Source: Perna viridis
Lineage: Eukaryota
Assembly (NCBI GenBank): GCA_037379345.1
Contig: CM074512.1
Span: forward strand, 69,957,597-70,021,596
Direction of reading: 5' to 3'
Length of the DNA stretch: 64,000 nucleotides
Every line of letters begins with the position of its first letter. Positions within the stretch are counted from its first letter, which is position 1. Below the pieces are notes generated by a model, which saw nothing but the letters and a program-made list of their open reading frames with translations, made no database searches and was not told the DNA's origin. Position numbers and translations under genes: made by a program. Below, piece by piece: positions 37,798 to 60,290 of this stretch.

Positions 37798-40700
37798 TCA
37801 TTTTACTGGACTTCTACTTTCAAATTTTAACTTCTTTGATGCAGGTGATGTAAATGGAACCTAAAAAAAATCGTAAGTGTTTCATAATTATTGGGTATGT
37901 GATTAAGCTTGGTGCACATTCCAAGTGCTACCAATAGTAAATGAAGTACAGCTCCCCCTAAGAATCATGCACAAGAAGACAATAAGTGATTCATGCAGAC
38001 CTTTAGCATAAATATATTTCGGTTGGAAACTCTTCAAGATGCAGGACATTCAGCATGCTAAAATACCTGGTTTAACCCACCAGTTCTATCAGAAATGTCT
38101 GCAACAAGTCAGGATCATGGCATTAGTATCCACCTTTTAGGTTTTGACCCTGATATTGCCATTTGTAATACTGAATTTGATCTTGACTATTGCCTTGAGT
38201 TCACCAGTTTAGTGATTTTGTAAGCACAAAAAATATTTGGCAGTAAACTCTTTAGTATGCCGATTAGATATTGTTTTAAAAAATGAAAAAAATGCCAGAA
38301 AAAGTTGAATTTAGTAGAAATTAACATGAAATTCTCAGCTGAATTTTTCTATTAAAAACAGTGCAGGGAAATTTTGCCTCCAATATTTGTACACTATTTT
38401 AACACTGTAACAAATTGTTAATTCTGTCAAAATATACTCTATCGAAACAAACATTTTATATGTTACTTAAAGGATCAAGTCTACTTAAGATTAAATATGG
38501 TTTTTAGACAGATAAATACAAAACAGAATCATAATTTACAATGAAACGCAAAAAGAACTCAAGTCAACATATTCTACTTTTCATTGATAACCATTTTTAC
38601 AGGCAGTTTAGACTTATGGTTAAGTTGGTTGTTCAAACATGCATTACATGTAAGCGGGGGTATAAAAAGATATAATCAATTAACCAAGCTTACCTTAGAC
38701 CATTTCTCCAACAACTTTTCATATTCTGACATATAAAATGCAAACACTTCATCACAATCTCTTCTGACAACACTACCAGGGGGATTGTATGTTCTACAGT
38801 TATCTCTCACTAACAACATGTCTGAATGAAAGTCCTCATAGTGGCTATAGCTACCAGTCTGCTTACAGAAAACAAAAATTAACAGAACAATGTTACAATA
38901 GATGTCAACCTCATGAACAAGAAATAATTTGAGTAGACTCGCATGCCTGCTTCAAATCAAGTTAAATGTTAAGTCAGATTGATTCTAATTATTTTCTGTC
39001 ATGCACACCTATACATAATGCCCAATCAAAATCTCTTCAACAGTTTAGTAGCAGGAATCTTGACATCTCAGTTTGACTAACAAGTGCATTTAAAACAAAA
39101 TCCTCAACTCTAAGAGGTATAGGAAGATTACTCGTGAACAGTGAATGGTTTATGTATTAAGTATTTTATGGCACACAGAAATGTGTGCAAGATTGATCAA
39201 ACTGTAATTTATTAGAGTCACAGGAAAGATGGATAGATATGGAGGCTCCTTCCATACCAACTCTCTCATCAAGGAACAAATCATGTCCTTGTTGCAAACT
39301 TCATGAATTTAAAATTTCGGTAAAATCCATACCTTAGTTTGACCCTCATCCCCCCAAAAAACTGAAGATATTTTACTGTAATAAACAATGATTAATTAAG
39401 ACCTCTAGTTTCCTTTTGATTGTTCCAAAATCCATGGGACTTTTTATAATACTGTAGTAATCTGGTGCATCATTGGGATCAACTGAAAAAGATAATGATC
39501 ACCTTCTGTAGTGTCAAGTTAATACTTTAATAACAAGGCCAAACAAAAAAGTTGAATTTAACCAAATCAGAAGTAAATATAGATCAAAAATAGAATCATA
39601 ACGGTACTTATCAGGAACAAAAAACAGGATTTGAAGCCCAAGAAAATCATTTCTGATAAATTTCACATTTATCAATTACAAAAAATTTAAAGTACAAAGT
39701 TTAAAATCATTTATACATGCTGTACTTTGAGGGTATTTTTTTATGATCTTCATTTAAAATCATTTTGATGGAAACATTAATAAAGTTAACCAAAAATCAA
39801 AGCCAGTAAGTCTTGCCATATTTATCATTTCAAAAATGCAACGGTTCATATATAAAACCACTAACTACTTGAAATATTGATGCTAATAAAGTGACCATTT
39901 CTAAATACTTCTTATTACCAGTGAATTTCATATTTTCTTCATCAATTTAAACATTCTAATTTGCTAGACGATGCTAAGTCAAACAAGCATTCTGACAGTA
40001 TTGCTGATGCATACAGTGTCCCCTTTCGGCCTTTGAACTCATTGCCTTTATGAGATTTTTTTTTTTATATATGTGAACTAACAACGGATGGTGTTATTTT
40101 TTAACAATCAAGAGAAAATAACTCTTGAACAGCAAAAGCAAATTCCATCAAAATCAAACCTGAGCTTCATTTTACAGTAGATAATAACATTTTTGCATTA
40201 CAGAAAGCTGCATAAAGACATTCTCTTTCTATCACCTGGAAAGTTGAAAAAAACTTCGTTATTAAGAATTAAAGGGCAAATAACTCTAGAATGACAACAG
40301 CAATTTGCATCAAAATGATGAAACAAAATTTTATGTAATTTTCTATGTCAAAGGGCCATAAGTTCCATATAAACCATTTTGCCGAAATAATAATTAAATT
40401 TAATTTGTAACTTGTCATGATAAGACTAGCTAACAAATATGAAATCAATTGGATGAGGCATTACAAAGAAAAGTCTGGAAAACGAAGTGTGACTGACGGA
40501 CTGACGGACAGATGGATGGACGGAGTGCAAACCTAGGAATCCAAGGGACACAATGTCAGTAAAAATCATTCAACCGTAACATCATTCGAACTTAACTTGT
40601 AACTTGTCATAAGACTATATACCAAATATGAAATCAATTGGACGAGGCATTACAAAAAAAGTCCAGAAAACATAAAATTTCATGAAATTCTGTATGTCCA

Positions 40701-43700
40701 AGGGCCATAACTTCCGTAAAAATCATTCAACTGTAAGGTCATTCAAACTTAACTTGTAACTTGTCATGATAAGACTATATGCCAAATATGAAATCAATTG
40801 GATGAAGCATTACAAAAAAAGTCAGAAAAACATAAAATTCCAAGGGCCATAACTTCTGTAAAAATCGTTCAACCATAATGTCATTCGAACTTAACTTGTA
40901 ACTTGTCATGATAAGACTAAATACAAAATATGAAATCAATTGGATGAGGCATTACAAAAAAAAAGTCTGGAAAACATAAAATTTCATGAAATTTTCTATG
41001 TCCAAGGGCCATAACTTCTGTAAAAATTGTTCAACCGTAACGTCATTCGAACTTAACTTGTAATTTGTCATAAGACTATATACCAAATATGAAATCAATT
41101 GGATGAGGGATTACAAAAAAAAGTCTGGAAAACGAAGTGTGACTGATGGACAGATGGATGGACGGAGTGCAAACCTAAGTCCCCTTCGGCATTTGCCGAA
41201 AGGGGACAACTATAAAAGAGACAAAGATATGTGGCATCATTTGTACAACAGACAATGCTAAATGACAAGTATTGCTGGCAGACAGGACATACTCAACCTT
41301 CGGAAGCACCTATGTCAAACCCCTTTTTTTTTTTATTAAAGTAGTTGCTAGTGCTCTAGTTGTTTCCCTTATCTTCAGTTTTTATGCATTATTTATTTTA
41401 TTTGGTCTGCTACACTGTGTGTGACATCTTGTTTCCTTTATCTTCAGGTTTTATGTTTTATCATTTTTATTTGGTCTGCTACACTGTGTGTGACATCTTG
41501 TTTCCCTTATCTTCAGTTTTTATGTGTTATCTATTTTATTTGGTTCATTGTGTGTGTCGATCTGTATCATGTGTTCATGTTTAGGTCATATTTTGGGATT
41601 TTGAAGTCTTTGAATCATCCCTCTACTGATGCCTTTTTTTTGGCCGATATTTATAATTGTTGGTACACGTGTAACCCATAATGTTATGTCAAACTTCTAG
41701 TATAACAGATCATACTATGTCCAGCAATTGACGCAAAGTTTACCTGGTTTTAAGAACCATGAAGCAGCATTCATTTCTCCTTTATCCCTACTAAGTCCTC
41801 TGTATTTAGATACTCTTTGTATTAACCTGTAATTATACAGTGATAAAATGAACAGGTAATCATATTGTATAAAGAATATAAACGCTTAAATTCTTTATCT
41901 TTAAAATATCAAGACTAAACTTTTAAGAAGTATATCATATACATAACTTTAAGACAAGTTTTGTATGTATTAGCACATCGTTTTTTTCTTTAGAGCTCAT
42001 CATTTCTTCAAGTATATTTAAATAGGAGATGTGGTATGCCAATAAGACAGTCATCCATCAAATCCCAAGAAACCAACAAGCAGACTTCTACAGGTCACTA
42101 CATGGTCTTCAACGATGGGCAAAACCCATACCATAAAGCAAGCTGTAAAAGGCACAAAATAAATGAAGTGAAACTATTCATAAAAGATGAAAAATCTACC
42201 TCATCTATGTTATTTCAAGCATTCTTACCACAGACAAGACTTTGACCACCCTGTATTCTGCGAAGTAGGACTATCCTCAAGGTTACTGGGAGGTTTCCTC
42301 TTCCTCTTACTCAGACGTACATTGGGATCCATATTTGCTGCATCTAATGATTCTACAGAATTACTAGTTCCTTAAAAAGATAGAATTTACATGATAATGA
42401 CTAGCGCCAACATAGAATTACATTTTATAATGACAATAGTGCATTCACATGGTAATCAAATTTAGCCTGTGTTGCAGGTCCATATTATTGTCAACATTTC
42501 ATCTTTTTGAACACCATTTCAGTCTTTTTTTCTAAGGAGAATGTTGAATTTCAGCTTTTTGTCAACCTTATAATTTTTATAGGTGCACCTGGTCCATGCT
42601 TCAAGTTTTTAGTGGAATCTGAGTTGCTCATTTGCTTTTGTTTCTTTGTATGTATGATTTTAGTTACTTTATATTCTTTGTTGTGTATGTCTGTTTCCCA
42701 TGTCTGGTTTTTGTCCCTGGATTGCATTCTTTTGATTACTGCTATAACCTTGGTTCCCTTGATTACTCCTTCTACTTGTAATACAAGACAGGAGGGAATA
42801 AGTTTTTTACATAATTAAAATTTTAAAACTGATACTTGGGAGGGGGGGGATAATACACAAAATGGGGAAGGGTATGCATTGTCAATGTTTCCAAATTTAG
42901 GCATGTCAAGCCAAGGGTGTCAGAGTTTAAAATTTGTCAAGTTGTGTACTTCTGAGCTCAAGTTTTATTTGCTCGTCAAAAACAGGCTTATTCAAGAACT
43001 TTTTCATTCATTGAGGCTATTTCATACATATTATTGTGTCCGAACACTGTAGTATTTACACTTGGCATGGGTATTAGCAGAGTGTTCAATAGATTAACTC
43101 TTCTAATTTCAATAACTTTTAACTCAAAAGAGGCATGCTCATTTCCAAAGAAACTCACCTGAAGATGAATTGCTGGCCACACCAATATCTTCCAATCCAA
43201 CAATTTCTCCTTGAACTTCATTAGAATCAACAGTGGTTTCTATTGTGACAGGCATTTCACCTGATGGAGCACTATCTATGTAAGTAGTGTCAATATTCTC
43301 AGCTATAGTAGTGTTTGAATCATCAATGATTTCAGCTGTATATATGCCTTCTTCCTGTGACAAAACTGCTTCATGTATGACACTTGTGGATGGCTAAAAT
43401 ATAAAAGACAAAAATTTTTAATAACACTCTTTCAAATTCAGGAAGATGACAAAACATATAAGTCCCATATCTTGAATTTAATAATTTGTAAGACAGAAAT
43501 ACCGTACCAAGATTGTAAAGCTGCTAAGAAAATAAAGGTTAATATCTGCATTTTCATGTGTGTACCTCTATAAATCTAGCTTTATTTATCATGTACATGT
43601 AGTTGCCATCTTTTCTCTACGAAATTTCTGAACTTTCACTTCATGCAAGCAGGGTGTGCCAATTAAGTTAGTTTGTTTCATGTTGGGACTACACTTTACA

Positions 43701-46700
43701 GTACCATCTCCTAGTACAAGTAATCTTTCTAAATGTCTAGTATATAGAGTTACTTTGTCAAATGTCAAAGTTTCTCAGTCTAAAGACCACTGTCAAAGCA
43801 AGCCTTATTCTTTTGTCCCAGTCAGTACAATTATCGTCATACTGCAGTGTATGATGTATGTGTCATATAGGGCTAGCTGATGAAAATTTTATTTGCACTA
43901 ACTGAAATCAAGGTCACCCGTCAGTAAATGAATCTTGAAAAATGAATAAGATTCTGTTGTCCTCTGAACAAGTATAATTTAACTTTTATTTGTCTGAATG
44001 GTAGTTATGCTTGTCCCCCTTTAATGTCATACCCTATACTGGCACCTCACCTGTGTATGAGTTGTGATATTGATGGTGGATGACTTTGAGATTTCTTGGA
44101 TAGGAATAAAACTACTGGACGATGCTGATTTGATCCGAATCATGGGACCCATCTGAGATCCTTCATTACTAGTGGATACATCCACCGTTTCCTGTTCAAC
44201 AGGTTGACCAGCAGTGGTAGAGGTATACACTTCATATGGAGTTGATGTCACCTCTGAAAAAAAAACCCAACAAAAACATACAACTATAACTTTTTGATTT
44301 AGTATTATTCTGATGAAACCTTTACAGAACACCTAAACTAGTGATATTTTGGTGGAAATACATGCATTTTACATAGATAACTCTACCCATAAAAAAAAAT
44401 AATCATAAAATAATGAAAGGGATTGATTACCTTATGACATCAAGAAAAGTGCTCTTCTTAAAATAATGCAAATTAACAGAAATGTTGGAACAGTGTTCTT
44501 CCTTGTGTGATTGATAACTATTTTTAAATATAGCATGAAGTGGGTCTTACTTACCAACAACTTCTGTGCTGGATTGATTTGCAGCAGCCACTGCCGCCAC
44601 CTTTTCCGCCAGAATGTCCTCTTCCATAAACTGGTAAGAATCTAAGTTTATATTAGCTTGTTCTAAAGAACTACTTAACAAGTCAAATGATTTAGCAGCA
44701 CTCGAAGACACAACAACTTGAGACTGAGTCAAATTTTCTGAGGTTGATGATGAAGATGAATTCTCAGAAGAGTTTGTGTTATAAAAAATTCCTGTTTGAG
44801 GATCAAGTTCACCTTGTAAATTCAGACGCTGAGCTATTTGTTCTAGCTCAGCCTGAGAGTTCTGATTAGATATTTGAATGGCAGCACCAGCAGCTTCATC
44901 TTGAATTACTGTTGTTTCAACCTGAATAGCAAAGAATTTTTCTTAAGTTCTGACTACATGTATCTTAAAATGAGAGAGTAGAAAATATGACCCGTTAGGG
45001 CAATTCACACAAATGTGTATAAAACTTTCATTATTAAGTACCACTCCATATAAAATTTAGACACTGACATGAAAAACCCATCAAACAAATGTTTTTTGTT
45101 TGTTTCAGTGATTTATCCAAACATTGCTTGTGTAAACATGTTCAATTATTCACAGTGTGAAATAAATTCAGTAATTTTGCTGATTTTTTCCCGCTAATAT
45201 GTTATACTTCAACATTACAATTAACATATTTTACCATAATTGACATCGCTTTTTTTCAAATAACAGAATAAAATTAATTGTAGAATATGTAGACATTTTT
45301 TTATGATTCTTTTCTTGACTTTAACTTATCCTAAGATGTCATTAAATGATTGATTTGTTTTTTTAATCATACCTCTTGGACTTGAGGAGCATCACTGTCC
45401 TGTGAGTCCATCCTCAATATTGACACCCTTTCAGCTGCTTTATCTGGTTGGTTCAACATTTTCATTGCTTGTTCTGTAACAGAACATATAGCATGAATGA
45501 TGTTACAAGTGCAAACTTTCATTAAATTTTATACAAATATACTTAAATCTCTCGTAATTTTATCAATATGTTAGTAAAAAAAAATAATCATGTCCAAGCA
45601 TTATGATTTTTAAGACAAAGCCAATTTAAAAACAAAAAATGAATGTATACTTGTAATTTGACATCCTACTGCTATATGTAAGATGGATCTTTCTTTTACC
45701 ATTATCCCCCAAAGTTTTAAAATTACACCTTTAAACTTACCAATTGTGTAATATTGCTGCTGAGATAATTGGTCAACATTCAGTTGACTCAGATCTATAC
45801 TGGAAGCCCTAAAAACACAAAAAAAACTTATATCAATACAAGATTAAGATTTCCCTATGTATCAACATATTCTCCCTCAATATCAAAGGCCATTAAATTA
45901 AAATAAAATTATCATTTTGATTCATACATGTTCTTAAAACCATTTTTCCAATCAGTCCCTTTCTATTTTAATACATCTTTTTTTTTTCATGTTTAGTCAC
46001 TTGTTCTACACTACTGATTTGTTTTTGTTGCTGACAACTGAGACTTAATGCAGTACTGAAAAATTTATAATATTGGTTCATTTTGGCTGAGACTTAAATA
46101 TTGTATGAAACATTATTACATATTCAGACATTTGTATCTAATGACTATAATTTATTCCAACAGACAATAAAATGGAAATCATAATTCACATAGATTTCAT
46201 TTACTGTGTTGATCAATTTGATGGTGCTATGAGTTATCATTTTGGTAATGTATGAGTAATTGTGTCCACAACCTATTTCATGATTGGGGCCATTTTTGAG
46301 ATAATCATGTAGTTCTAGCTGTAAAAACACTATGTAAACAAGTAGAGAAACAGGATTTTACCCTGTGAGCAGGTGATTACTCTAGTCCTTCAATTTCCAA
46401 ACTTTTCAGAATTGCACTTTCTTCATGGAAACTAGAAAATTTGAAGCTATAACTCACCCTAATGTTATAAATATATTATAAATATTATTATTAACAACTC
46501 ACAGGGTAAGTTTCTATGTGCACTGTATAAAGTTTTAAATGATACTGTGAACTCATTTTCACCTTACCTCTGTACAGTGACTTTTGGCTTCTCCTGTGAT
46601 GTTGATGGTTGAGAATCTATGATTGCCTGTAGAGCTTGGTTATCTATACCTTGGCTTGTGTAGGCCTGATTGCCATCGTCATACTCAAACCATTCATTGC

Positions 46701-49700
46701 TAGGCAAGCCTTGACTAGTCACAACTGAAAGACAATACAATCATAAAATTTGTTGCATGATCTACAAAACATTTCTCAAATTCTACTGGCATTTAATTGA
46801 AGATCACTAAAAATTATATGAACGGAGCACCATCAATGTCCTACATATGTAGAATGTAAGACCAGTCTAAGAATGCTAAAAAATAATCTGACCAAAGAGG
46901 CGACAGTTGTCAACACAGAAGTAGATAATTGTGCAAGTGCAGGGGCGCTGCTTTGTCTTTTAATATGACATAGCGCTCCATCCACCATAGACATAGCCTA
47001 AAATCATATTCATTGAATAAATAACTATTATGTACAGGTAATGAACTTTCATAGAAAACAGCACTAAAAAGTTGTGTGAAATGCAGAAGTACAAAAAATA
47101 TATAATATTTTAATACCAAATATACATACATACATGTACGAGAAACTTAAATACAGGGGTGATTTTAAGATGTCCACAAACAAAGCAGAAATTGGCAAAT
47201 TTGGAAGTAAATATATGTTAAAAAAAAGAATTTTAATGGTAAAATCTGGATTTGAAATAGGGGAATTTCACTAAAAAGCGGGAAAAAAATTGTCCCTGTA
47301 AATACTACAAATATTGTGAAGTTGTGATATCATAAACATGGCTACATTAAAAAAAATCTGTAAACAAAGCAACTCTGTAGTAAAATCATGAAGGTTTATA
47401 AATGTTGTCCAAAAGAAGGTTATACAATCTTGTGGATAAATGTTGAAAAAGTTTTACATTGATGACAAATACTGCATACCTTTGGTTTGTTCAGAAGCTT
47501 GACTAGACACTGCTAAAGCTGCCATTGTCGCTTCATCTAGATTGATAGTAACATCACCTCCACCTTCTCCTTCTTGTATACCTGCTGCCTTTATAAGGTC
47601 AGCAAGAATGTTATTGTTCTTCGCTTCAGCTTCCATTCTTATTCTCTGTAATGTAATATTCATAGAGTAGTTAATCTCACCACAGAACTACCCATACACA
47701 TGTATATGTGTATAGATATTACATTCAATAAGCCATGTTACTACAGACCTCCTGCCATGGAAACCTATTGTCAATCTAATTGATATTAAACTTTCTAATT
47801 GTTCCATCCATTTACTACACACGTCATGAAGACCTCTCACCTGACTTGAACTGTACTACTTAACTGCACATACATGTATTATCACATAAAACAATTTTTA
47901 ACAGTTAAAGATTGTAACATTCATTTAACTAGAACTATAGAGAATGTTTGGGTCAGTCTGAACACTTACTCAACTAGAACTATAGAGAACGTTTGGGTCA
48001 CTGTCAACACTTACTCAACTAGAACTATAGAGAACGTTTGGGTCACTCTCAACACTTACTTAACTAGAACTATAGAGAACGTTTGGGTCACTGTCAACAC
48101 TTACTCAACTAGAACTATAGAGAACGTTTGGGTCACTGTCAACACTTACTCAACTAGAACTATAGAGAACGTTTGGGTCACTCTCAACACTTACTCAACT
48201 AGAACTATAGAGAACGTTTGGGTCACTGTCAACACTTACTCAACTAGAACTATAGAGAACGTTTGGGTCACTCTCAACACTTACTCAACTAGAACTATAG
48301 AGAACGTCTGGGTCACTCTCAACACTTACTGAACTAGAACTATAGAGAACTAGAACTATAGAGAATGTTTGTGTAACTCTCAACACTTACTTCACTAGAA
48401 CTATAGAGAACGTTTGGGTCACTCTCAACACTTACCTAACTAGAACTATAGAGAATGTTTGGGTCACTGTCAACACTTACTTAACTAGAACTATAGAGAA
48501 CATTTGGGTCACTGTCAACACTTACTCAACTAGAACTATAGAGAACGTTTGGGTCACTGTCAACACTTACTTCACTAGAACTATAGAGAACGTTTGGGTC
48601 ACTCTCAACACTTACTTAACTAGAACTACAGAGAACATTTGGGTCACTGTCAACACTTACTCAACTAGAACTATAGAGAACGTTTGGGTCACTCTCAACA
48701 CTTACTTAACTAGAACTACAGAGAATGTTTGGGTCAGTCTCAACACTTACTGAACTAGAACTATAGAGAACTAGAACTATAGAGAATGTTTGTGTAACTC
48801 TCAACACTTACTTCACTAGAACTATCGAAAAAACATTTGGGTCAGTCACAACATCTGATTTGTATCTTGTCAATTGATTCAGATTTGTGCCAGTCTAAGG
48901 TGGATTATTAATACATTGTAGGACTATATGATCATTGAACATGCATTAGTAGGAGAGCTTCACTGTCAGTGACAAAATATAAATCATAATTGGTTATTTA
49001 AACTACTGAAATAAGATCAAGTCTTTGTTTCATTTTTTCCCCTACTGACATGAAGCATAACACTAATTTCCAAATTTATAGTTCTATGCATCACCAGTGC
49101 AGTAAGCAGACTTGAGTTATCATAGATTGTTTACCAAAATTAGCCGTATCACAAAATTATAAACCCCCAAAGCACTTAAGCTTCATTCCTAGTACATGGT
49201 AGAAGTTCTTGGTGCTGGATCAGATTTCCTATTTCCATTATAGTATTTTAAGTACTTCTTGTATACAATTTAGTTTTGGACTTCATTATTCCTTATTATT
49301 ATTTGGTACAGTTGATAAAAGGTTACTCCTTGAAACATGTACAGCATACTGAACCCACCTGTCTAGTAGCCTCTAACTGGCCTGGTGTTGTTACAATGAC
49401 TTTTCTCTCTATAGTTCTCTGGCCACTAGGTGTAGAGACAACAATATGTTTGGTGGAATCCTGTCTTTGTAAGAAATTAACAAGCTCCTGAAATAAAAGT
49501 GAAAGAATGAGCTTGAGAACTTGTAGAATAGCAATATAAGAATTACAAACCAAGTATGATTCAATTTTTCCTCTGAGTAGAACATACAATTGAAACTATA
49601 TGTTACTCTATCTACAAAAAGTATATTAAAACAGAAGGAAACTTAGTTTATCATCATTCCCTTATTTCACTCATCTGTTGGCTGTTATGCAATTCATTTT

Positions 49701-52700
49701 AACAAAAAGAAAACATTTAGCACTAGAAGTTTTAGCACAATAGGTCCAAAATAGAGGAATGAATTACCTGCAAATCTCTGAAATTGTGAATCTTTAGATA
49801 TAATTAAATGTCATTTGAAAACACTGTAGAAGATTATTATGAACTATTTTTAAGATGTGTAATTGTGTACTATGTTATACCTATGCTGTATTGTAGTCAT
49901 TCATTTTGTATAATTAGTTTGTGTTTTTATCATTTTCTTCTGTGAAACGACATTGAATATGTATTATATATGTAGAAACAGGCATTTAATCAAATTTTCA
50001 ACATTGAACTTTTTCCTCCTGTATCAATATTGTATTGGTTTACCTTTTCATAAGCAGATGACTTGATTGTCGTAGTTTTAGAAGTACCAGCACTGGGAGT
50101 TCCAGTTGAACGTCTTGGTTGTGTTTTCTGCACCACAATAACATTTGGCTTCCCACCTTCACATAAATAAAACAAACAAAAAATGTTCTTTCTACTGACA
50201 AAAACTGAAAGTTTTTTTTCAATATACTAATGTCAAATGGCATAATATATATGTACTTAACTAATATTGCTATTAATAAGTTTGTGGATGTAAATTGGGT
50301 TAAGGAAGTAATTAAAAACAATATCAAATGTTAATGTCAAGATACTCTAAAACACCTCTCTGCTCTCAAGAATTCAGTTAGTATTGGTTTTCATTCATGT
50401 AAATCATGCAATTACATGTTCTACTATAATGAAAATCAAGACTGATTAAATGAATGTTGTTTTTTTTTAAGTTTTATGGTATCTTTTTTCATCAACTGTA
50501 TATACAAGCTTTGATTATTACACAGTTAATCTATTTTGTTAACTTAAAAATGAGACTCTCTAGTTATGAAGAAGTAACAATTCATATAGTCAGTTCAAAT
50601 ATTTCCCATCACAATCTTACCATGTTTACTGCCCTGTGTCTTAACAGCATGTAGCTGTAATGTTTTAGGATTAACAGTGACAACATTAGGATTTCTGCCT
50701 GTCCCTGTTGAGATTATCTTTCCTCCTTGTGTAGTTATATTCAAAATCTTTGCACCACTCTGTCCTGTAAAATAACAAAATTGTATTAATAACCAAGAAA
50801 TTGGAACATAGAAAATTTCTGATATTTACCCTCTATTATAAAACAATTCCAAGGATACTTATGGAACAGCAAAAGAAATTATCAAGAAAGTGCACATGAC
50901 CTATATTTTAGATCTCAATAAAGCCATGTCATTTAATCACTTGAACAAGATTTTTGCTTTTGGGTTTTGGGTTTTTGTTTTTTTTTTAATTTAGTCAGTC
51001 TTCACAGCCAAATTACATTAAAACATCACAAACTGGATTACTTAGGTATAAAAAAGTTTTGTTTAGAACTCTATAAATAGCCCTTGTCACTAACCAATGG
51101 AAGTGATAGGTCTGGTAACCATGGTAACATTAGATGAACTTGCAACTGATGACCCAGCACTGACTACAACAACAGGAGTACCTGAAGCAGATGATGTTTG
51201 TGACATCTTGGGAAGGATTTTACCTGAACCTCCAGCACTAATTATCTTCATACCTACAATAACACCAAATAATCATTAGAACTAGAGAAAGATGAATTAA
51301 TCACAGACACCTCGGCATTCAAAATTAAAATAAAAAAAGGGCCATTACTCTTGAAAAGTAAATATAGAAGACTCCATTGAACACAAACTTTATGGTCCAA
51401 AGCATGGTGTTACAGTTTGAACTGTAAAGATATTAATTAAATTATAATCTAAAAAAAGAACACTATATATCTATGATTTATTGGGCTTAGGTATAAAAAT
51501 AATTTACCTTCAATAGTTTAGTGTTAGTCATGTTGGTCGACAAACACATATAATTGTGTCTTAAATTTTATATTTTTTAAAATTTATTTCTATCTAAGGA
51601 GAAAATTGACTTGTAAGTCCCTACACAATCAAACTGACCTCCCTCCTGTTTGATCTGTACATTAGTACCACCTTTTGTGACAGGTTTAATGTGTATATTC
51701 TGTACATTCTGCGGGTTAGGCTGTACAGGGTGAGGACCCATCGGTATGACAACTCCAGGCTTCTGTGAACCTTGTTGTACCTAGTAAAGAACAAAACAGT
51801 CTAAGAGAAAAAAACATTTCCTTACAAGGCTTTCAGTAATATTGTAAAAAGGCATCTATCAGCACCAAAAACCTTCAAAATAGTTATTGACAGTGATAGG
51901 CTAATGCCTTTCTCATATTAATTACTTACATTAGGGAATCTTTGTCTTGGGAAGGTCTTCACTCTTGGTCTTGGTACACTGACAGTGGGAGTCAAGAAGG
52001 TCATAGTTGAAGTAGTAATTGAAGTTCCTTAAAAAAAAACGATGTAATGTGAACTAACAATTACAATGTATTATACTTATCATGTAATCAATACCCCCAT
52101 TTAAAATAGGTTTTCATCAACATGAAATAAGACTTCTAGTATTTAATCCATTTTAATTCAACTTACAAAATGTTCAAATTCCCATACTTAATTCAGTGTA
52201 AAATACAAATCAAAATAATCATATGTGCTAATATAGAAGACAAACTGTTAACTTCAATCTTACCTGATCCAACTGAAGCTACTGCAGTTGATGTTACAAC
52301 ACCAGATGTCACTGATGTGTTTGGGAGAATAATGGAGGCTTTACTACTTCCTGTCATGCTCGCTGAAGTCTTTACAACTGGAACTGTGATTGATTTCTGT
52401 AGTACATTAGGTGAAGTTTGTCCTGATGACATCAAAATCACCTGCAAATAAATGTAAGTCAACAACTTTGAGATTATTTCAAGCACAATTTCTATTCTGC
52501 TTACATTTCAATTCAAAATGACCCTATATAATATACATTAATTATAAACCAGGACTATAGCAACTCACATGCAGCAGTGTTCTAGGATCTTTTAAACTTT
52601 TCCACTTTTTCAACTTAAATTGAAGTTCACTTTTAGAACTTAACTAATCCTTACAGAATTCAAGTTTTCTACTTGCCAAAGGGAAAAAAGTACAAAATAG

Positions 52701-55700
52701 TTTTCCCACACCAAAACTGCACTTGCCTCATGTGATTGGTTACTGGAACAAAATAACTTTTCTACATCAAAAATGCACTTGCCTCAGGTGACTAGAAAGT
52801 GAAATTAAATAACTTTCCCAAACTTTTGCATTTGCCTTGCGTCATTAGAAAGTGGACAGAAATAACTCCCACATCAAAATTGCACTAACATTGGGTGATT
52901 GGAAAGTGGAACAAAATAATTTTCCAACACCAAAAATGCACTTGCCTCTGGTCATTAGAAAGTGGAACAAAATAACTTTCCCACATCAAAATTGCACTTG
53001 CCTCAGGTGATGGGAAAGTTAAACAAAATAACTTTCCCACACCAAAATTGCACTTGCCTCAGATGATTGAAAGTGTAACAAAATATTTCACACCAAAACT
53101 GCACTTGCCTCAAGTGATTGGAAAGTGTAACCAAATAACTGTCCCACAACAAAATCGCACTTGCCTCAGGTAACAGGAAAGTGGAATCCTAGAGCACTGA
53201 AGCAGTGATACAGTTTGCCTCCAATTACCTCAGAAGTAAGGCTATTTCCCCTTATAAAAGTCTCTCAACTTTCAAAAAATGGTTCAAAAATTATTTCCCA
53301 GAGCCAGACTGCTAAGTATGATATTTCTTGTCCAAATTTACTGATCTTTTTCTGTATACCTAATTCATTATTCCAAATTTAAAAAAAAAGATGATGCCAA
53401 TTTCCTAATAAAAAGAGGATGGGAAGTTTAAAAAAAAACCCAAAATAACAAAAATATCACTGAAATGTTTGTCAGTACCTTCTGGGATTGTGTAGTGGTA
53501 CCTGTCATCTGACTTCGGGGACTTTTACTGATGGTGATTTTCATTGGTGAGACTCCTGTAACAGGACTGGGTGTTGTGGTGGTATAAGTAACCCTGGGGG
53601 TCTGTGTTGATGCAGAAGGGGATACTAAACTCTCGGCTGAGTGACTTCTCCTTCTTTTTCTCTCTGGTCCTTCTTCTTCATCTTCCGTGTTCAAACCACC
53701 TTTATAAAAAATATAATATACAAATGCAATATAAATTAAAGAATAAGCAGAACTCTTTTGAACACATTTTTGTCAGTATGGCCACAGCCACTGTTTAAAC
53801 TGTTGTTTTGTGTTTTTAAACAGCTTTATTTAATTATTCCCTTAAATCATAACGGTTAGAGAAAATTAATACTGGGGAAACACTACTTTGTGTAATTAAA
53901 ATTCTTACCTTTGATATGAATAGACATTCCACTAGGCAAAACAACAACATTAGAGTTAGGACTGGTTGGTCTGTTTGTCTTAGTTACCCCACTGCTGCTG
54001 ACTGGCAGAGGTGGAGAGATTGCTGAAGATACTGGAATTAAAAAAAAAAAACCAACTACAATGAAATCTTAGAGAATGGTCTAAATAAAAATGTCTACAT
54101 GAACAATAAAAACCTTTATGTTCAACTTTTAACATTAATTTTCTGAGTCAACAAACCAAGGCTAGTAGGGGTATAAGCATTAAATTGGCATTAATTTGTG
54201 ATGCAATGATGGTAATGGATCTGTACACCAAATATCACTGACCTTGCATAAGGGATTCATGATTAAATGAACTTATCAGAAAACTTAACATTAAAATTGT
54301 GGACGCAGCCATCAGCAGAAGCAAAAACTAAGTTTGCCTTCCGCGGCTTTTGTCGCAGGCAAGACAAAAATGAACAGCTAAAAATGCACTCACATGTATA
54401 AAAGTCACATTTAGTATATTGCTTTTATTTTCTTCTATCCCTATTCATATGTTTTAATAGGATTTCACAAATGGAAATTATGCATTAAAGCAACTCACAG
54501 CTCTTCATAAAAAAGTGACAACGCTTAAGGACAAAGCTCTTTTTTTTGTTTGGTTGATTTTAGGAATGACTATTAAGTGTTTTCTGTCTATGAAGAAATA
54601 ACCCCAATCAAATGGTGCACACTAATTAACCTGCAAAGCAAGTGTGCACCCCTGGCATTATTTTAAAGAGACAGAAAAAATGTAACAGTCATTTCTAATA
54701 ATTTAATATAAGTACCTTGTATCAAAATTTAACAAGTAATTCATCAAAAAAGGTTCATGATGTCACAGTCACATAATAATATTTGGTCTATGAGATGATG
54801 GACAAAAGTTTTTATCAAATCAGAAAGCATTTTACTTCTGAATTAAATTATTTTTTAATAAACCTAATTATAACAATTATAACTGATATCAAACAATTTT
54901 TTTTTTACAGCAACATAAAAAATAACCAGAATGTGACTTACAATCTTTATTTCCAGTCTGTGAAGGAGCGGGCATACTGGCATTTTTCTCTGCCTGAATG
55001 TTAGCAGCTTCATTAGCCTTGGCAGTAAAAGCAGTCTGTGGTACCAGTCTAGGCATCAAGGGAATGAGTCTTCTCCCCTCTATCAACCACTCAGACATTG
55101 TATTGGGACCAGATACACTGCAAAAATAAAGGAATTTATTTTCATTTATTATTTTACAGTGTTGTGAACTGTTGAAATTAAAATAGGTAAACAAATAGAC
55201 AGATGAGAAGACAAGGCAACATGCATAAGTTTTGATTCTAACATTAATCAATAAACAGTATCCTAGCTAGGGCAAAATGGTACTGTGCCCTGCCCCATAT
55301 AGTGCCCATTTACAGTTATCTGAATATCTCTTCAAGATAACACTCTTGTTAATAAATTACCCCAAGCCAATTAAGAAGTGTCACCTTCATCAACTACATC
55401 CTGTCATAATTAACCCTCAGGTAACTATTAGTGATCAATCAGCTGATCATGGTTATCAGATGATGATTGACAAGTAGAAAATGGATCCTGATTGGAACTA
55501 TCACCATTTTATGGACAACCAATCATAGGTTATTAATTAATTTCTACTGCTAAATTAATTTTGCAAATATTTTTAAGTTAACAGGTCCAAGTTTTCTAGA
55601 ACAATTAAATGTAAACAATTGCATTTTGCACATGTTTGTTCAAAATGTTAGTTACCTCCCTTACAATTTCAATATCTTTAGGATTTTCTATATCTTCAAC

Positions 55701-58700
55701 AGTATAGAAAATAATATTCCTCTTAATTACATAGTAAAGGTTAAGATTAGGTTTCAGTACAATTAACTTAATCTTTTCTGAGTTTTCAAGTCTTTCCTTT
55801 TTTTACTTATGAAAAGAAGTGAATATGATGTGTTTTAGAAAAGTTTGGGAAAAATGTGGATGTATGTACATGGATCTCCGCTGTTCAACTGTTGCTGTTG
55901 TCAAGAACCTAACCTGCCCCAGAAATAATATAACTGCAAATTGTATTATTCAAGTCGTAGCATAGTTTTTCTAAGATAGGAAAGGAACTTGTTTTCTTTT
56001 TTTGAATTTACAGCTGTCAGTTGCGTCTGAATTTTGTTTACGACAAATGATATGTGTAAAATATTGCCACCATCTGTGGAGAACTGTAATATTCTGGTAT
56101 CTGTATAAATCAATCTGACATGCTAAAACTGAAAAGGATGTTGCTAGAGATGCTCTTAAGGGTTAAAAATTGTAAAGTATGATGGAAGTGCTACATAGTT
56201 ATTGATCATTTTGAAAGCGAGGGGAAGGGGGATGGGGCTGGGATTTTGGAAAAATAAGAAAAATGAATAAGTGATATTTTTTGGAAAAACATTTTTTACT
56301 CATTCATTGAAAAAAAAAAAAAAACTATTTCCCCCATTATTTAACAAGGCAGATTTTCAAATAAAAATATTGATTTTGCTTGTTGCCAAAATATATAAAA
56401 AAAAAAAAAAAACTTGCACTTGTGAAACAAAAATTCTAATCTGATCCCCACCCCTCTGTGCCAAAGGAGTTTTTAATGTCCTTTTATTTTAACATGATAT
56501 ATACATTTCAAATGAAGACAAAAAAAAAAAGAAAAAAAAGAAAAAAAATAAATTATACATGTAACAGCAGCTAATAGCTTTATGTCACAACAGTAAAATA
56601 AAGTTGGTTGTGTAAAATACATACTAATCAGCAACTGTACAAAGCTTCTCATCATTTATGGCTCTCCTTACTTCAGCCCGATGTCTCTCAGTTGATATAC
56701 TACAATGTAACAAAAACAACAAATATCTGATTCAGGTGGGTAAATCAGCAACTCTACAGAGTTCAATAAGATATACTGTTAAGAATTAATGTTGCATCAA
56801 GATTTAATAAAAAGCTAAATACTGCTAAGACCTTAAAAACCTTTCAATATATCTTGACCATTTCCTATTTATGTGAGAAAGAAGAATCCATTTGCATGTA
56901 CACATCATAATACATTATTAAGTTAGAGGATATCACTCACTGAAGGCTTAGAAAAACAAAAGATTGTAAAAGTGCATTATCAATACAAGACTTACTTAAA
57001 ACAAGAGGTTCCCAGGAGCCTGAATCGCTCACCTGTTGAATTTTGCCTTACAAAGGCAATAAATTAAACAAGTTGTCCAACAATTTTGACTCAAGAAGTC
57101 TTTGGTAGGACTATTACAAGATCTTTTCAACAATGGAAAGTTTCTTTTAATCTACCATAGTTTTCAAGATATTGACTGAAAACTATTAAAAAAAAAGTCA
57201 TTTTTCCCCTTTCCAGGGCAATAACTCTTACAAGGAGTCTAATGACTTTTATAGTCTTAATAATATGGATCATTTCAGCTATTGAAAGAATTTGGATAAA
57301 CCTAACGGTTTTGGAGATATACGTGAAAAACTACTATCTGACCCCTATGTTCTATTTCTAGTAACGGCAGCCATGTTTTTTTCAACGAATCACAAATCCC
57401 CACATCAGTTCTATGCAGGATACCCCAAGGAACATTCATATCAAGTTTGGTTTCAATTGGTCAAGTACTGTCAGAGGAGAAGATTTTTGAAAGAAATAAC
57501 ATTAAAAATAACATAAATCGTTAAAAAAAGGCAATATCACCAACATGACTCAACATTTTAAAACCAAACTTTGAACAGAGATAGACCTCATCATGCTGAA
57601 CACTTTTACCCTGCCAGAATTCAGTTAAACCTAACGTTTAGGAGATATATGTGAAAAAATACTGTCTGACCCCTATGTTCTATTTTTAGTAATGGCGGCC
57701 ATGTTTTTTGACGAATCAAAAATCCCCACACCAGTTCTATGCAGGATACCCCAAGGAACATTCATACCAAGTTTGGTTCTAATTAGTCAAGCAGTTTCAG
57801 AGGAGAAGAGTTTTGTATAATTCCTAACGACGATGACGGATGCCAAGTGATGGCAATAGCTCACATGGCCTTTGGCTAGGTGAGCTAAAAATCAGAACTA
57901 GTTCACAGTCAGCATCGCACTGAAATAAAAGACTAGATCAAAGACTGACCTGAGATTATATCGAAGACCCTAGAGAATTTTAAGACTGACCTAAGATAAT
58001 ATTGAAGACCCTGGAGAATTTTAAGACTGACCTAAGATAATACTGAAGACCCTGGAGAATTTTAAGACTGACCCAGTGTAGGAAACCACCGCTCGCTAGC
58101 TCGCCAAATACCAGTAGATGTGTAATTTGGTGAGTTCTCATTAGCTTACACTCTTCAATTTGACGACTGTCATTTGATTGGAGAGTTCCAAGGAAAGTTA
58201 ACCAGCCAACCGGTTATTTATTAAAAATATGTTTCCTACATTTTAAGAAGTTTAGCTTGAATATGTTAAGTGAATTTTGGCATGATATGCACAATTTTAT
58301 TGACTTGTAAAGCATTGTTTACAATCTGCCATTTAAATTTCCGGTAAACAGGATGTGCCAAAACCTTCACGACGGTTCAGATCTCATATTAGTATTCAAA
58401 TGAAATTATCTTGGTAATTTATGATATGTTACCTTGCAAATTAGTTGTTTATTGTCACAATAAAAATGAAAAAGAAGCAAATGATAAACATTTTCTTGTT
58501 TCATAATGATGAATCTGCAGAAACATTTTTTAAATATGAGTTCAGAAATGAGTACTTATTCTGTTACTGTAAAGTAAATGAAAAACTTCAAAGGGAGGGA
58601 ATATTCGAAAATGGAAAAGTTTTTGATAAATTTAAAAACAAATGAAAAGATAGTAGAAGAAAGAAAAGGAAAGGCAGAAGATAGTCAAATCCAAGAGAAA

Positions 58701-59151
58701 ACAAATGGTAGTACAGAAAAAAACCCAAATATGTGAAGAGCATAGACATTTTTTGAATGAATGGAAATAATTTGGCTAGTTGAATTTATATTTGGCTAGC
58801 AAGGTCAATATTCCACTAGCCAGAATGGCAAGTTGGGAAAAAAAATGGTTTCCCACACTGGTGACCTATGAGATAATATGGAAGACCCTAAAGAATTTTA
58901 AGACTGACCTGAGATAAAATTGAAGATCTTGGAGAATTTTAAGGCTGACCTGAGATAATATTGAAGATCTTGGAGAATTTTAAGACTGACCTGAGATAAT
59001 ATTGAAGATCTTGGAGAATTTTTTTCTTTTCCTTTGTTAGGTCTCCTTGTGCCCTAAAAGCTGAAATGAGGGAAGAGTAAGCTTCCAATTCCATCCTCCG
59101 TAACATCCTTTTGGACTCATCCTTAGACATATCAAGTAGTAATGGCCACAT
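37798..59151 (-). CDS. EMSY: EMSY (BRCA2-interacting transcriptional repressor) orthologue with C-terminal bromodomain, 24 coding exons, about 1182 aa
   Basis: Exons 5' to 3': 59151-58991, 56699-56625, 55117-54942, 54031-53909, 53699-53479, 52441-52264, 52027-51930, 51780-51639, 51253-51095, 50764-50621, 50156-50044, 49487-49359, 47645-47480, 46724-46568, 45808-45741, 45473-45373, 44921-44555, 44253-44051, 43393-43159, 42370-42229, 41826-41744, 39482-39403, 38858-38694, 37860-37798 (TGA). All introns are GT-AG and phase-compatible, total 3549 nt. EMSY-like blocks: ENT domain, RLIPLMPRLVPQTAF, SNVVVLPSG, KILPK, KPNVIVVQKT. Confidence 0.9.
38694..42260 (-). CDS. Bromodomain-encoding exons at the C-terminus of the EMSY gene (missed by the ORF track)
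   Basis: Spliced translation GWSKSCLWLIQRVSKY...AASWFLKPVDPNDAPDYYSIIKSPMDFGTIKRKLETGSYSHYEDFHSDMLLVRDNCRTYNPPGSVVRRDCDEVFAFYMSEYEKL fits the bromodomain consensus, including the acetyl-lysine-binding Tyr and Asn. Confidence 0.93.
39982..41210 (-). mobile_element. Helentron-type element with internal tandem array of about 160-bp units
   Basis: aacaag end with gtcccc sub-terminal repeat, about 5 core units (aaatcaattgga at about 40442, 40630, 40791, 40933, 41093), gacg/gatg microsatellite, terminal hairpin gtccccttcggcatttgccgaaaggggac. Confidence 0.75.
41358..41545. repeat. About 70-bp tandem repeat, 2.5 copies
   Basis: ttgtttcccttatcttcag...ttttatttggtctgctacactgtgtgtgacatc repeated. Confidence 0.8.
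42023..42165. repeat. Degenerate copy of a dispersed short repeat
   Basis: agatgtggtatg...ggtcac...cttcaacgatgggcaaaacccatacc...aaaaggc resembles an abundant bivalve interspersed repeat as I recall it. Only one copy in this window. Confidence 0.4.
42581..42768 (+). mobile_element. Second, 5'-truncated 3'-terminal fragment of the Penelope-like family
   Basis: Highly similar to 60103-60290. It explains the look-alike ORFs 42507..42818 and 60011..60283. Confidence 0.7.
47154..47298. mobile_element. 145-bp MITE with CAG termini and 6-bp TSD
   Basis: caggggtgatttt / aaaattgtccctg with a perfect taaata duplication on both sides. Confidence 0.7.
47925..48845 (-). repeat. 45-bp minisatellite, about 20 copies, each with a GTAAGT donor consensus on the EMSY strand
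   Basis: Unit caactagaactatagagaacgtttgggtcactctcaacacttact. Confidence 0.95.
52575..53199. mobile_element. MITE carrying an internal minisatellite (about 58 bp x 9)
   Basis: TIR cagtgttctaggat / atcctagagcactg, flanks atgcag/aagcag, internal unit ttcccacaccaaaattgcacttgcctcaggtgattggaaagtggaacaaaataact. Confidence 0.75.
54942..59151 (-). CDS. EMSY: EMSY N-terminal (ENT) domain and adjacent HP1-binding region, coding exons 1-3
   Basis: MWPLLLDMSKDESKRMLRRMELEAYSSLISAFRAQGDLTKEKKKILQDLQYYLSISTERHRAEVRRAINDEKL...SGPNTMSEWLIEGRRLIPLMPRLVPQ closely parallels the human EMSY N-terminus. Confidence 0.96.
57000..57890 (-). mobile_element. Complete Helentron-type non-autonomous element
   Basis: Head ttttagctcacctagccaaaggccatgtgagcta at 57890, two internal core repeats, tail caggtgagcgattcaggctc...cctcttgtt at 57000. 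Confidence 0.75.
57942..59021 (-). repeat. 41-bp minisatellite copied from the 3' end and donor of EMSY coding exon 1, split by a MITE
   Basis: Unit taagactgacctgagataatattgaagatcttggagaattt, about 4 copies at 58861-59021 and about 3 at 57942-58073. Confidence 0.9.
58074..58860. mobile_element. MITE inserted into the 41-bp splice-donor minisatellite
   Basis: TIR cagtgtaggaaacc / ggtttcccacactg, flanks ctgacc/gtgacc, and the 41-bp array continues on both sides. Confidence 0.8.
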
Positions 59152-60052: not shown

Positions 60053-60290
60053 ATGAGCAACTCTGCGGGCGTTTCTAGAAAAGCAGAGGACGCTTACCCT
60101 ACTGGTGCACCTGGTCCACGCTCCCAGTTTTTAGTGGAGTCCGAGTTGTTCATTTGCTTTTGTTACTTTGTATGTATGATTTTAATTACTTTATGTTCTT
60201 TGTTGTGTATGTCTGTTTCCCATGTCTGGTCTCTGTCCCTGGATTGCATTCTTTTGATTACCGCTATAACCTTGGTTCCCTAGATTACTC
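60053..60290 (+). mobile_element. Solo 3'-terminal fragment of the Penelope-like family
   Basis: Colinear homology with the reverse complement of 992-1207 (tttctagaaaagcag..gacgcttaccct...ggttccct). Confidence 0.7.

Follow-up and report, generated by a model that had tools for sequence, protein, structure and literature searches.

A Perna viridis EMSY gene that ends in a bromodomain, an architecture recorded from sponges to amphioxus

The 64-kb window of the Perna viridis genome (the whole stretch of DNA analysed here) carries on its minus strand, from 59151 to 37798, a gene of 24 exons with 3549 nt of coding sequence, or 1182 codons and a stop. The exon chain was rebuilt from the sequence, with its ATG at 59151 and the final stop base at 37798; all introns are GT..AG with consistent phases throughout, and the numbers are identical to those of a preliminary description of this DNA. 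The encoded order is an ENT domain (exons 1–2), a linker rich in serine (14%) and threonine (10.5%), a KRKRK patch (exon 20), a bromodomain (exons 21–23) and a short basic tail (exon 24). Pfam scans of each of the 24 exons assign exons 1 and 2 to ENT and exons 22 and 23 to Bromodomain; the remaining 20, including each of exons 4 to 16 and exon 21 by itself, gave no domain match. The 1182-aa model was joined in a script for length and stop count, and searches were run with single exons or with database orthologues. The features are as follows.

58991..59151, minus: exon 1, ATG at 59151, first ENT half (Pfam ENT E=5.5e-14, 52.4 bits, profile 1-40); donor GTCAGT; matches residues 1-53 of Mytilus edulis EMSY-like
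56625..56699, minus: exon 2, second ENT half (ISTERHRAEVRRAINDE); Pfam ENT profile 43-66 at 23.7 bits, so that the fragment alone falls short of the 28.5-bit cut-off; phase 2 on both sides
54942..55117, minus: exon 3, conserved post-ENT motif SEWLIEGRRLIPLMPRLVPQTAF; open frame, near-identical in the gharial EMSY alignment, tblastn
53909..54031, minus: exon 4, linker with the NVVVLPSG motif common to vertebrates; splice sites, M. edulis match
53479..53699, minus: exon 5, linker, an acidic stretch and then an ERKRRRS patch; gharial and M. edulis alignments
52264..52441, minus: exon 6, S/T-rich linker; splice sites, frame, M. edulis match
51930..52027, minus: exon 7, linker; acceptor located, M. 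edulis match
51639..51780, minus: exon 8, linker; splice sites, frame, M. edulis match
51095..51253, minus: exon 9, S/T-rich linker; splice sites, frame, M. edulis match
50621..50764, minus: exon 10, linker; splice sites, frame, M. edulis match
50044..50156, minus: exon 11, linker with a KPNVIVVQK motif kept across phyla; splice sites, orthologue alignment
49359..49487, minus: exon 12, linker; splice sites, frame, M. edulis match
47480..47645, minus: exon 13, linker; splice sites, frame, M. edulis match
46568..46724, minus: exon 14, linker; splice sites, frame, M. edulis match
45741..45808, minus: exon 15, small linker exon located via the M. edulis protein; splice sites
45373..45473, minus: exon 16, linker; splice sites, frame, M. 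edulis match
44555..44921, minus: exon 17, the largest, with a conserved DLLSSSLEQA.INLD.YQF motif; RNA joint 44555/44253 in three runs; single copy
44051..44253, minus: exon 18; RNA joints at both ends (runs X1, X6 and X9)
43159..43393, minus: exon 19, the last with detectable vertebrate EMSY similarity; RNA joints 44051/43393 and 43159/42370
42229..42370, minus: exon 20, where the basic patch is LSKRKRKPP and the helix preceding the bromodomain begins; RNA joints
41744..41826, minus: exon 21, helix Z of the bromodomain as far as the WF..P shelf (AASWFLKP); RNA joints 42229/41826 and 41744/39482, orthologue alignment
39403..39482, minus: exon 22, ZA loop (VDPNDAPDYYSIIKSPMDFGTIKRKLE) with the conserved Tyr; Pfam Bromodomain E=1e-6, 29.0 bits, profile 23-47; RNA joints
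38694..38858, minus: exon 23, helices B and C, whose NC..YN motif contains the acetyl-lysine Asn; Pfam Bromodomain E=1e-7, 32.2 bits, profile 49-83; joint 39403/38858 in X1 and X6
37798..37860, minus: exon 24, coding part, conserved tail VPFTSPASKKLKFESRSPVK and stop codon; orthologue alignment
37060..37797, minus: 3' UTR, extent inferred; the X9 contig continues 782 nt past 38692, with ATTAAA signals at 37091 and 37070
38859..39402, minus: intron 22, retained in some contigs; read-through adds 9 codons and then a stop
58869..59022, no strand: 41-bp minisatellite, 3.8 copies, covering the final 32 nt of exon 1 together with the donor (Tandem Repeats Finder)

Splicing of exons 17 through 23 to one another is seen in Logan contigs of X1, X6 and X9, three runs that belong to three studies and whose label as RNA is a guess. 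The four junctions singled out for checking in the preliminary description—44051/43393, 43159/42370, 42229/41826 and 41744/39482—are all spliced in these runs, as is 44555/44253, and single contigs cross all of these: record 21 of X9 (4919 nt), record 6 of X1 (3356 nt) and record 20 of X6 (3298 nt). Their lengths of 3.3–4.9 kb are the size expected for a whole EMSY mRNA, and upstream of 44253 they have 2608–2693 nt, a fit to 2578 coding nt with a short 5' UTR in addition; for P. viridis, the joining of exons 1–16 to the 3' exons is based on this length and on the orthologues. At the other end, the contigs cease to match the genome at 38692, which is consistent with a donor at 38694 spliced to exon 24 at 37860. 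A processed retrocopy was considered as the origin of the spliced joints and ruled out, since exon 1, exon 17 and exon 23 match the 723-Mb genome at a single place each. The locus is a real, expressed EMSY gene ending in a bromodomain, and the earlier proposal of one gene and one mRNA joining ENT to the bromodomain stands, on the in-phase chain and the spliced contigs.

Could EMSY and a small neighbouring bromodomain gene have been merged, by read-through or by the model, with normally separate products? The contigs cannot show each molecule at full length, and a cluster of Logan proteins of 212–214 aa carrying a bromodomain only (P0006) at first resembled a separate short product; in a related species these frames read on across introns 22 and 23, left unspliced, and the cluster was rejected as a separate bromodomain mRNA. 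All of the junctions are in phase without an intervening stop or start, the spliced contigs extend from far upstream across the bromodomain, the linking exons 17–20 hold conserved motifs, and the single frame is kept from sponges to amphioxus, also on intron-free transcript contigs. We regard a merger of two genes as very improbable.

Intron 22 is unspliced in record 1 of X1, record 16 of X6 and record 21 of X9, with the spliced joint 39403/38858 also present in X1 and X6; the contigs give no isoform proportions. Read-through of this intron, which had escaped the preliminary description, would truncate the bromodomain and remove helices B and C, and judging by these contigs part of the EMSY output may be made without a complete bromodomain.

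The N-terminal end is that of EMSY. The ENT profile (PF03735) found in exons 1 and 2 scores 85 bits in the collinear M. edulis orthologue, and the top solved relatives in the structure database are EMSY ENT structures. Similarity continues past the domain, with SEWLIEGRRLIPLMPRLVPQTAF, NVVVLPSG and the RKRRR patch aligning in the same order with gharial EMSY. In human EMSY the ENT domain dimerises and, together with the adjoining motif, docks HP1 and BS69, the docking site being the region that corresponds to exon 3; the post-ENT docking motif RRLIPLMPRLVPQTAF is kept in the P. viridis protein. The S/T-rich linker of about 900 residues is probably disordered. The SKRKRK patch, which the preliminary description had placed ahead of the bromodomain and which we locate in exon 20, is probably a nuclear localisation signal; across a 35-sequence alignment that includes sponges, its RKR core reaches at least 90% conservation.

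The closest comparison is with the RefSeq EMSY-like protein X1 of Mytilus edulis (P0157; 1170 aa, ENT 14-82, Bromodomain 1061-1131), which is collinear with all 24 P. viridis exons at 83% identity. Invertebrate RefSeq and UniProt entries named 'BRCA2-interacting transcriptional repressor EMSY-like' have the same order of ENT, long linker, KRKRK patch, bromodomain and basic tail, examples being Magallana gigas X3, Branchiostoma floridae XP_035692520.1, Trichoplax adhaerens B3S7M2 and Strigamia maritima T1J4R7. There is no difference in kind between these and the P. viridis protein, which is the orthologue in another mytilid. An older GenBank model from M. edulis (CAG2251966.1, P0004) lacks both ENT exons and exon 22, and some database models are therefore incomplete.

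Vertebrate EMSY (human C11orf30; structures 1UTU, 1UZ3 and 2FMM) resembles the mussel protein in its ENT domain and S/T-rich linker. Over the first 300 residues, covering ENT and the adjoining motif, gharial EMSY and the mussel protein are 51% identical, and the two align to about residue 953 of 1170, short of the basic patch. Exon 17 matches residues 1145-1306 of gharial EMSY (BLASTP) and weak C-terminal similarity extends to exon 19; vertebrate EMSY stops where mussel exon 19 ends, without the KRKRK patch, bromodomain or tail. As the preliminary description had stated, vertebrate EMSY has only the ENT domain, in each of the listed proteins from bony and cartilaginous fishes, a frog, reptiles, birds and a platypus. 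Each listed insect EMSY likewise has ENT only, and this loss of the bromodomain in insects is absent from the preliminary description.

EMSY with both domains is recorded in sponges, Trichoplax, cnidarians, molluscs, annelids, nemerteans, a brachiopod, echinoderms, hemichordates, amphioxus, myriapods and a tick. Our own Pfam scans found both in a chiton, a clam, an annelid, a sea star, a sea urchin, an acorn worm, amphioxus, Trichoplax, an octocoral, a hydrozoan, a jellyfish, a millipede and two sponges, and many further species have both in precomputed Pfam annotation; the sponge genera with this architecture are Sycon and Corticium. Full-length frames with ENT and a bromodomain lie on Logan contigs of just 3.7–5.1 kb, which must therefore be mRNAs. 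The P. viridis protein belongs with this metazoan orthogroup: its reading frame, the spliced RNA and a motif alignment with 23 taxa show both domains in one frame, the bromodomain standing C-terminally between the KRKRK patch and a basic SP.SKK tail.

Bromodomain relatives were gathered by an exhaustive HMMER search with exon 23; a word-indexed search that started from the chiton orthologue's bromodomain region gave two proteins, a number set by the limit of the index. EMSY-type bromodomains are 46–91% identical to P. viridis exon 23, and multi-bromodomain proteins of other families reach at most about 45%. Identity between the EMSY type and other bromodomain families is about 30–40%, and the EMSY type forms a conserved group of its own, with no vertebrate member among the named matches.

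The preliminary description had left open whether the architecture is an ancestral animal form lost in vertebrates or a lineage-specific fusion. Because it runs from sponges and placozoans to amphioxus, the data support the first, with ENT plus bromodomain as the ancestral animal form of EMSY, lost in vertebrates and in insects. That the fusion is confined to molluscs or lophotrochozoans has a negligible probability in our estimation: both domains occur together in EMSY of Porifera, Placozoa, Cnidaria, Ecdysozoa (myriapods and a tick), Ambulacraria and Cephalochordata, across which the bromodomains keep the above identity to exon 23 and the flanking motifs are common. In chordates the point of loss is bracketed, between amphioxus and the jawed vertebrates sampled. 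Very probably, the locus holds this mytilid mussel's single-copy EMSY orthologue, retained in its ancestral metazoan form.

The bromodomain itself appears intact. Both exon 22 and exon 23 score above the cut-off of 21.7 bits for PF00439, and in the M. edulis orthologue the domain scores 73.9 bits over profile positions 13-83. The pocket residues in P. viridis lie in PDYY of exon 22 (the ZA-loop Tyr) and NCRTYN of exon 23 (the Asn of YN); neither this Tyr and Asn nor PMD, WF and NC..YN vary among 35 sequences that span sponges to amphioxus. The four-helix fold predicted for the EMSY-type domain, with the canonical Tyr and Asn, is also that of PBRM1, BRD4 BD2, BPTF, GCN5 and BAZ2A, which are related by sequence, and of BRD1, BRPF1 and CBP/EP300, which are related by fold. 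The predicted fold of an orthologous fragment (P0024, 65% identical to P. viridis in exon 23 and not the P. viridis sequence itself) is a left-handed four-helix bundle with ZA and BC loops, has pLDDT values of 93–99 across the domain and superposes on BRD1, BRPF1 and CBP with TM scores of 0.85–0.89 and rmsd of 1.5–2.5 Å. Bromodomains without a working pocket typically lose the Tyr and Asn residues. From the conserved residues and the orthologous fold we infer that the EMSY bromodomain would read acetyl-lysine.

It is rather unlikely, though deserving some weight, that the domain is instead a structural or protein-binding module and not a reader of histone acetyl-lysine, perhaps one that recognises acetylated proteins other than histones, or different acyl marks, or that serves mainly as a regulated appendage which intron retention takes away. 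Intron 22 is, after all, retained in contigs of three runs, and two large animal groups have lost the domain yet kept EMSY, so that it is dispensable for some core function. The invariance of the acetyl-lysine-holding Asn and Tyr across these 35 sequences argues against such a module, as does superposition of the predicted orthologous fold on bromodomains that bind acetyl-lysine. 

With the bromodomain taken as an acetyl-lysine reader, as we favour, we propose that EMSY could act as a dimeric chromatin scaffold, in which the two tethered bromodomains of the dimer would read acetylated lysines directly while the N-terminus would hold co-repressor partners. The vertebrate and insect lineages would later have dropped the last five exons, leaving reading to partner proteins.

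In other eukaryotes ENT proteins have been reported in the company of bromodomain proteins, there on separate polypeptides. In Arabidopsis the bromodomain protein GTE4 and the ENT-containing EML1/2 are in one chromatin complex (10.1101/2024.07.25.605061). Plant EML1–4 combine ENT with Agenet/Tudor and have the bromodomain on another polypeptide, whereas mussel EMSY has its bromodomain in the same chain and Pfam finds no Agenet/Tudor domain in any of its 24 exons or in the scanned orthologues. The kinetoplastid ENT proteins Tb927.11.5230 and LmxM.24.0530 were found with BDF3 and BDF5 by co-purification or proximity labelling (PMC8559703, PMC9279504); they are separate from the bromodomain factors and merely distant ENT relatives, for which we claim no orthology to EMSY. 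A tentative reading, which we hold to be possible and no better than that, is that ENT and the bromodomain are an old functional pair, fused in the ancestral animal EMSY and carried on separate subunits in plant GTE4–EML and in kinetoplastid BDF5/BDF3 with its ENT protein. The original job of EMSY would then have been to bring partners to acetylated chromatin, and vertebrate and insect EMSY would be derived, reader-less forms dependent on bromodomain partners such as BS69/ZMYND11. If true, this would recast the route of human EMSY to chromatin; we found no such statement in print.

Human EMSY is a BRCA2-linked repressor that is amplified in breast and ovarian cancer, and it is not known to carry a domain that itself reads chromatin. 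An ancestral EMSY with a conserved and, by prediction, apparently functional bromodomain offers a concrete hypothesis on the original role of the protein, for which oyster, mussel, sea urchin, amphioxus and Hydractinia are tractable systems. The architecture is not new: as the preliminary description had allowed, it is already catalogued, in RefSeq and UniProt for dozens of invertebrate species, where it sits mostly under the name 'EMSY-like' and seemingly unremarked. The open-access literature yielded no paper on an animal EMSY that combines ENT with a bromodomain, an absence that is weak evidence. For genome annotation the result is an ordinary one, a well-behaved orthologue.

Rfam and tRNA scans of the whole 64-kb window gave no match, so that a very abundant element within intron 19 belongs to none of the known RNA families. 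The 41-bp minisatellite unit of exon 1 recurs in a second array at 57941-58073, and a repeated copy of the donor lies at 58950.

The window is AT-rich (G+C about 32%) and lies on contig 2 of a 46-contig, 723-Mb assembly. EMSY-like open stretches run along its minus strand from 59151 to 37798 (for example MWPLLLDMSKDESKRMLRRMELEAYSSLISAFRAQGDLTKEKK, ISTERHRAEVRRAINDE and SEWLIEGRRLIPLMPRLVPQTAF), and minus-strand open frames at the 3′ end of the gene encode a bromodomain, in which AASWFLKP is followed by VDPNDAPDYYSIIKSPMDFGTIKRKLE and then DMLLVRDNCRTYNPPGS. An exon chain was built by enumerating frame-keeping GT/AG pairs, using Mytilus edulis and chiton proteins as guides. A single chain resulted, with 24 exons, GT..AG introns throughout and consistent phases, and a coding total of 3549 nt (1182 codons plus the stop); it agrees to the base with the 24-exon model of the preliminary description, from the ATG at 59151 to the end of the stop codon at 37798. 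The linker is 14% Ser and 10.5% Thr. An exon of a neighboring gene, upstream of the EMSY 3′ end, was also recognized:

9782-10105, plus strand, N-terminal lobe of a GCK-III STE20 kinase (best solved relatives human STK25, STK24 and MST4, E about 1e-36)

Each exon was scanned separately against Pfam, for which the Bromodomain cut-off is 21.7 bits. The ENT domain and the bromodomain lie at opposite ends of the protein, and no Pfam match was found in the remaining twenty exons scanned singly.

Pfam matches of single exons
Exon 1, minus strand, ENT, profile 1-40, E=5.5e-14
Exon 2, minus strand, ENT, profile 43-66
Exon 22, minus strand, Bromodomain, profile 23-47, 29 bits, above cut-off
Exon 23, minus strand, Bromodomain, profile 49-83, 32 bits, above cut-off

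Public runs from the same organism contain 30-44% of the sampled words of 38600-44599. Logan contigs (assembled public reads) of four such runs from four studies, whose labeling as RNA is a guess only, were aligned to this segment, and three of the four (X1, X6 and X9) have minus-strand GT..AG spliced joints within it.

Spliced joints in Logan contigs
44555/44253, minus strand, X1, X6 and X9
44051/43393, minus strand, X1, X6 and X9
43159/42370, minus strand, X1, X6 and X9
42229/41826, minus strand, X1, X6 and X9
41744/39482, minus strand, X1, X6 and X9
39403/38858, minus strand, X1 and X6 only

The second to fifth of these are the junctions previously singled out for checking, and all four are spliced in all three runs. 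A processed retrocopy as the source of the joints is excluded, because exon 17, exon 1 (ENT) and exon 23 (bromodomain) each have one match in the genome. Exons 17-23 belong to one gene and one spliced RNA. Single contigs span the joints in X9 (record 21, 4919 nt), X1 (record 6, 3356 nt) and X6 (record 20, 3298 nt), with 2684, 2693 and 2608 nt, respectively, upstream of 44253. The coding sequence upstream of that position in the exon chain is 2578 nt, so these lengths fit contigs that include the start codon plus 30-115 nt of 5′ UTR; from their length we infer that they do extend that far, which would cover exons 1-16. At the other end, all contigs lose their match to the genome at 38692, which fits a donor after 38694 and a splice to exon 24 at 37860, the first two bases of exon 24 also being GT. 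The X9 contig continues for 782 nt past 38692, to an end close to two ATTAAA signals (37091 and 37070).

Some contigs of X1, X6 and X9 retain intron 22 (38859-39402) alongside the spliced form, in proportions that are not derivable from contigs. Translation reads through nine codons of the intron before a stop, and a protein made from the retained form would stop within the bromodomain, after the ZA loop and without helices B and C.

The RefSeq Mytilus edulis EMSY-like isoform X1 (P0157; 1170 aa) matches the entire 24-exon chain collinearly, with 83% identity; the window thus derives from another mytilid, and the gene structure has already been modeled in a relative. An older Mytilus edulis GenBank model, CAG2251966.1 (P0004), is without exons 1-2 (ENT) and exon 22, and therefore scores as bromodomain-only, whereas the RefSeq model is complete. 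Such incomplete models can keep database surveys from recognizing that ENT and the bromodomain occur together.

Searching 1.84 billion representative proteins exhaustively with exon 23 (HMMER) gave 266 matches. The nearest single-domain ones are 46-91% identical and include some two dozen proteins, about 800-1900 residues long, that match at their extreme C-terminus; multi-bromodomain proteins of other families reach at most about 45% identity. Pfam scans identified an N-terminal ENT and a C-terminal Bromodomain in proteins of a chiton, the soft-shell clam, the annelid Owenia, the crown-of-thorns star, a sea urchin, the hemichordate Ptychodera, amphioxus, Trichoplax, an octocoral, a hydrozoan, the jellyfish Sanderia, a millipede and the sponges Sycon and Corticium, mostly named in their sources as "BRCA2-interacting transcriptional repressor EMSY-like" or "Bromo domain-containing protein". 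Several full-length two-domain proteins are encoded on Logan contigs of just 3.7-5.1 kb, a size at which these must be spliced mRNAs.

Word-indexed queries with the ENT region returned two listings, each giving the precomputed Pfam domains of at least 120 EMSY proteins. Among the matches listed, both domains are present in nearly all molluscs and in annelids, nemerteans, Lingula, echinoderms, hemichordates, three amphioxus species, two myriapods and a soft tick; the few that depart from this are partial or split gene models. Every vertebrate listed (bony fishes, skates, frog, reptiles, birds and platypus) and every insect listed has ENT only, as do horseshoe crab and scorpion models, which may be isoforms or incomplete; separate Pfam scans of cockroach and horseshoe crab proteins upheld this.

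Judged from animals other than tunicates, jawless fishes, crustaceans and nematodes, the two-domain form of EMSY is ancestral in Metazoa; amphioxus has retained it, and vertebrates and insects have lost it. Of the two origins proposed in the preliminary description, the ancestral one is borne out by this distribution from sponges to amphioxus, with the listed vertebrates ENT only, and a lineage-specific fusion is not. Gharial EMSY is 51% identical to the mussel protein over residues 1-300, with a second, weak alignment over mussel residues 808-953, where the gharial protein ends; from this comparison vertebrate EMSY resembles the ancestral protein minus the portion encoded by the last five exons. 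The architecture is not new at the level of databases, as the preliminary description allowed: dozens of species already have it in their records, among them Trichoplax B3S7M2 and many RefSeq models. Among the 40 titles listed out of 52 open-access papers combining EMSY and bromodomain, no description of an animal ENT plus bromodomain fusion was found. What remains of value is the ancestral origin with vertebrate and insect loss, and the resulting hypothesis on EMSY function.

Conservation was examined in two alignments, one of the C-termini of 23 taxa and a separate one of 35 full sequences. In the latter the invariant positions are the WF shelf, the Tyr of the ZA loop, PMD, NC..YN (which contains the acetyl-lysine Asn) and an Asp after it, and conservation of the RKR core in the basic patch is 90% or more. 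The pre-domain helix and SP.SKK tail are also largely conserved. Exons 21-24 match every one of these conserved columns. An orthologous 234-aa fragment (P0024), rather than the window's own domain, was folded using the alignment; its predicted fold has a pLDDT of 93-99 across the domain and superposes on the BRD1, BRPF1 and CBP/EP300 bromodomains (TM 0.85-0.89, rmsd 1.5-2.5 Å). The nearest solved bromodomains by sequence—PBRM1, BRD4 BD2, BPTF, GCN5 and BAZ2A—are, judged by that measure, too distant to be orthologues.

In human EMSY (structures 1UTU, 1UZ3 and 2FMM) the ENT domain dimerizes. A motif adjoining the human ENT domain binds HP1 through its chromoshadow domain and BS69 through its MYND domain, and this motif is conserved in the mussel gene. 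The mussel protein would be a dimer bearing two flexible, tethered putative acetyl-lysine readers, which could put its N-terminal partners onto acetylated chromatin; nuclear import is the probable role of the KRKRK patch. In Arabidopsis the ENT-containing EML1/2 share one complex with GTE4, a bromodomain protein (10.1101/2024.07.25.605061), and in trypanosomatids an ENT protein is found together with bromodomain factors (PMC8559703, PMC9279504). The ENT-bromodomain pairing therefore recurs, as separate proteins in these organisms but fused in mussel EMSY.

Several repeats lie in or near the gene.

Repeats in the window
58869-59022 and 57941-58073, 41-bp minisatellite, 3.8 and 3.2 copies, 92-94% matches
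42608-42775 (intron 19) and about 60218-60385 (second copy), repeat of about 170 bp
47925-48771, tandem array, 45/135 bp period, intron 12
52692-53186, tandem array, 56 bp period, intron 5
40540-41133 and 41360-41544, tandem arrays, 142-160 bp and 69 bp periods, intron 21

The minisatellite takes in the exon 1 boundary, with the final 32 nt of the exon and the GTCAGT donor, so that copies of this boundary in intron 1 provide extra candidate donors 41 nt apart and out of frame. Scans for Rfam families and tRNAs gave no match to the repeat of about 170 bp, whose summed contig depth is 40,000-157,000 in all four runs, compared with 5-30 for EMSY exons; this is probably an interspersed element of very high abundance, transcribed or highly repeated. 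A plus-strand ORF of 152 aa that arises from the 45-bp array is spurious.
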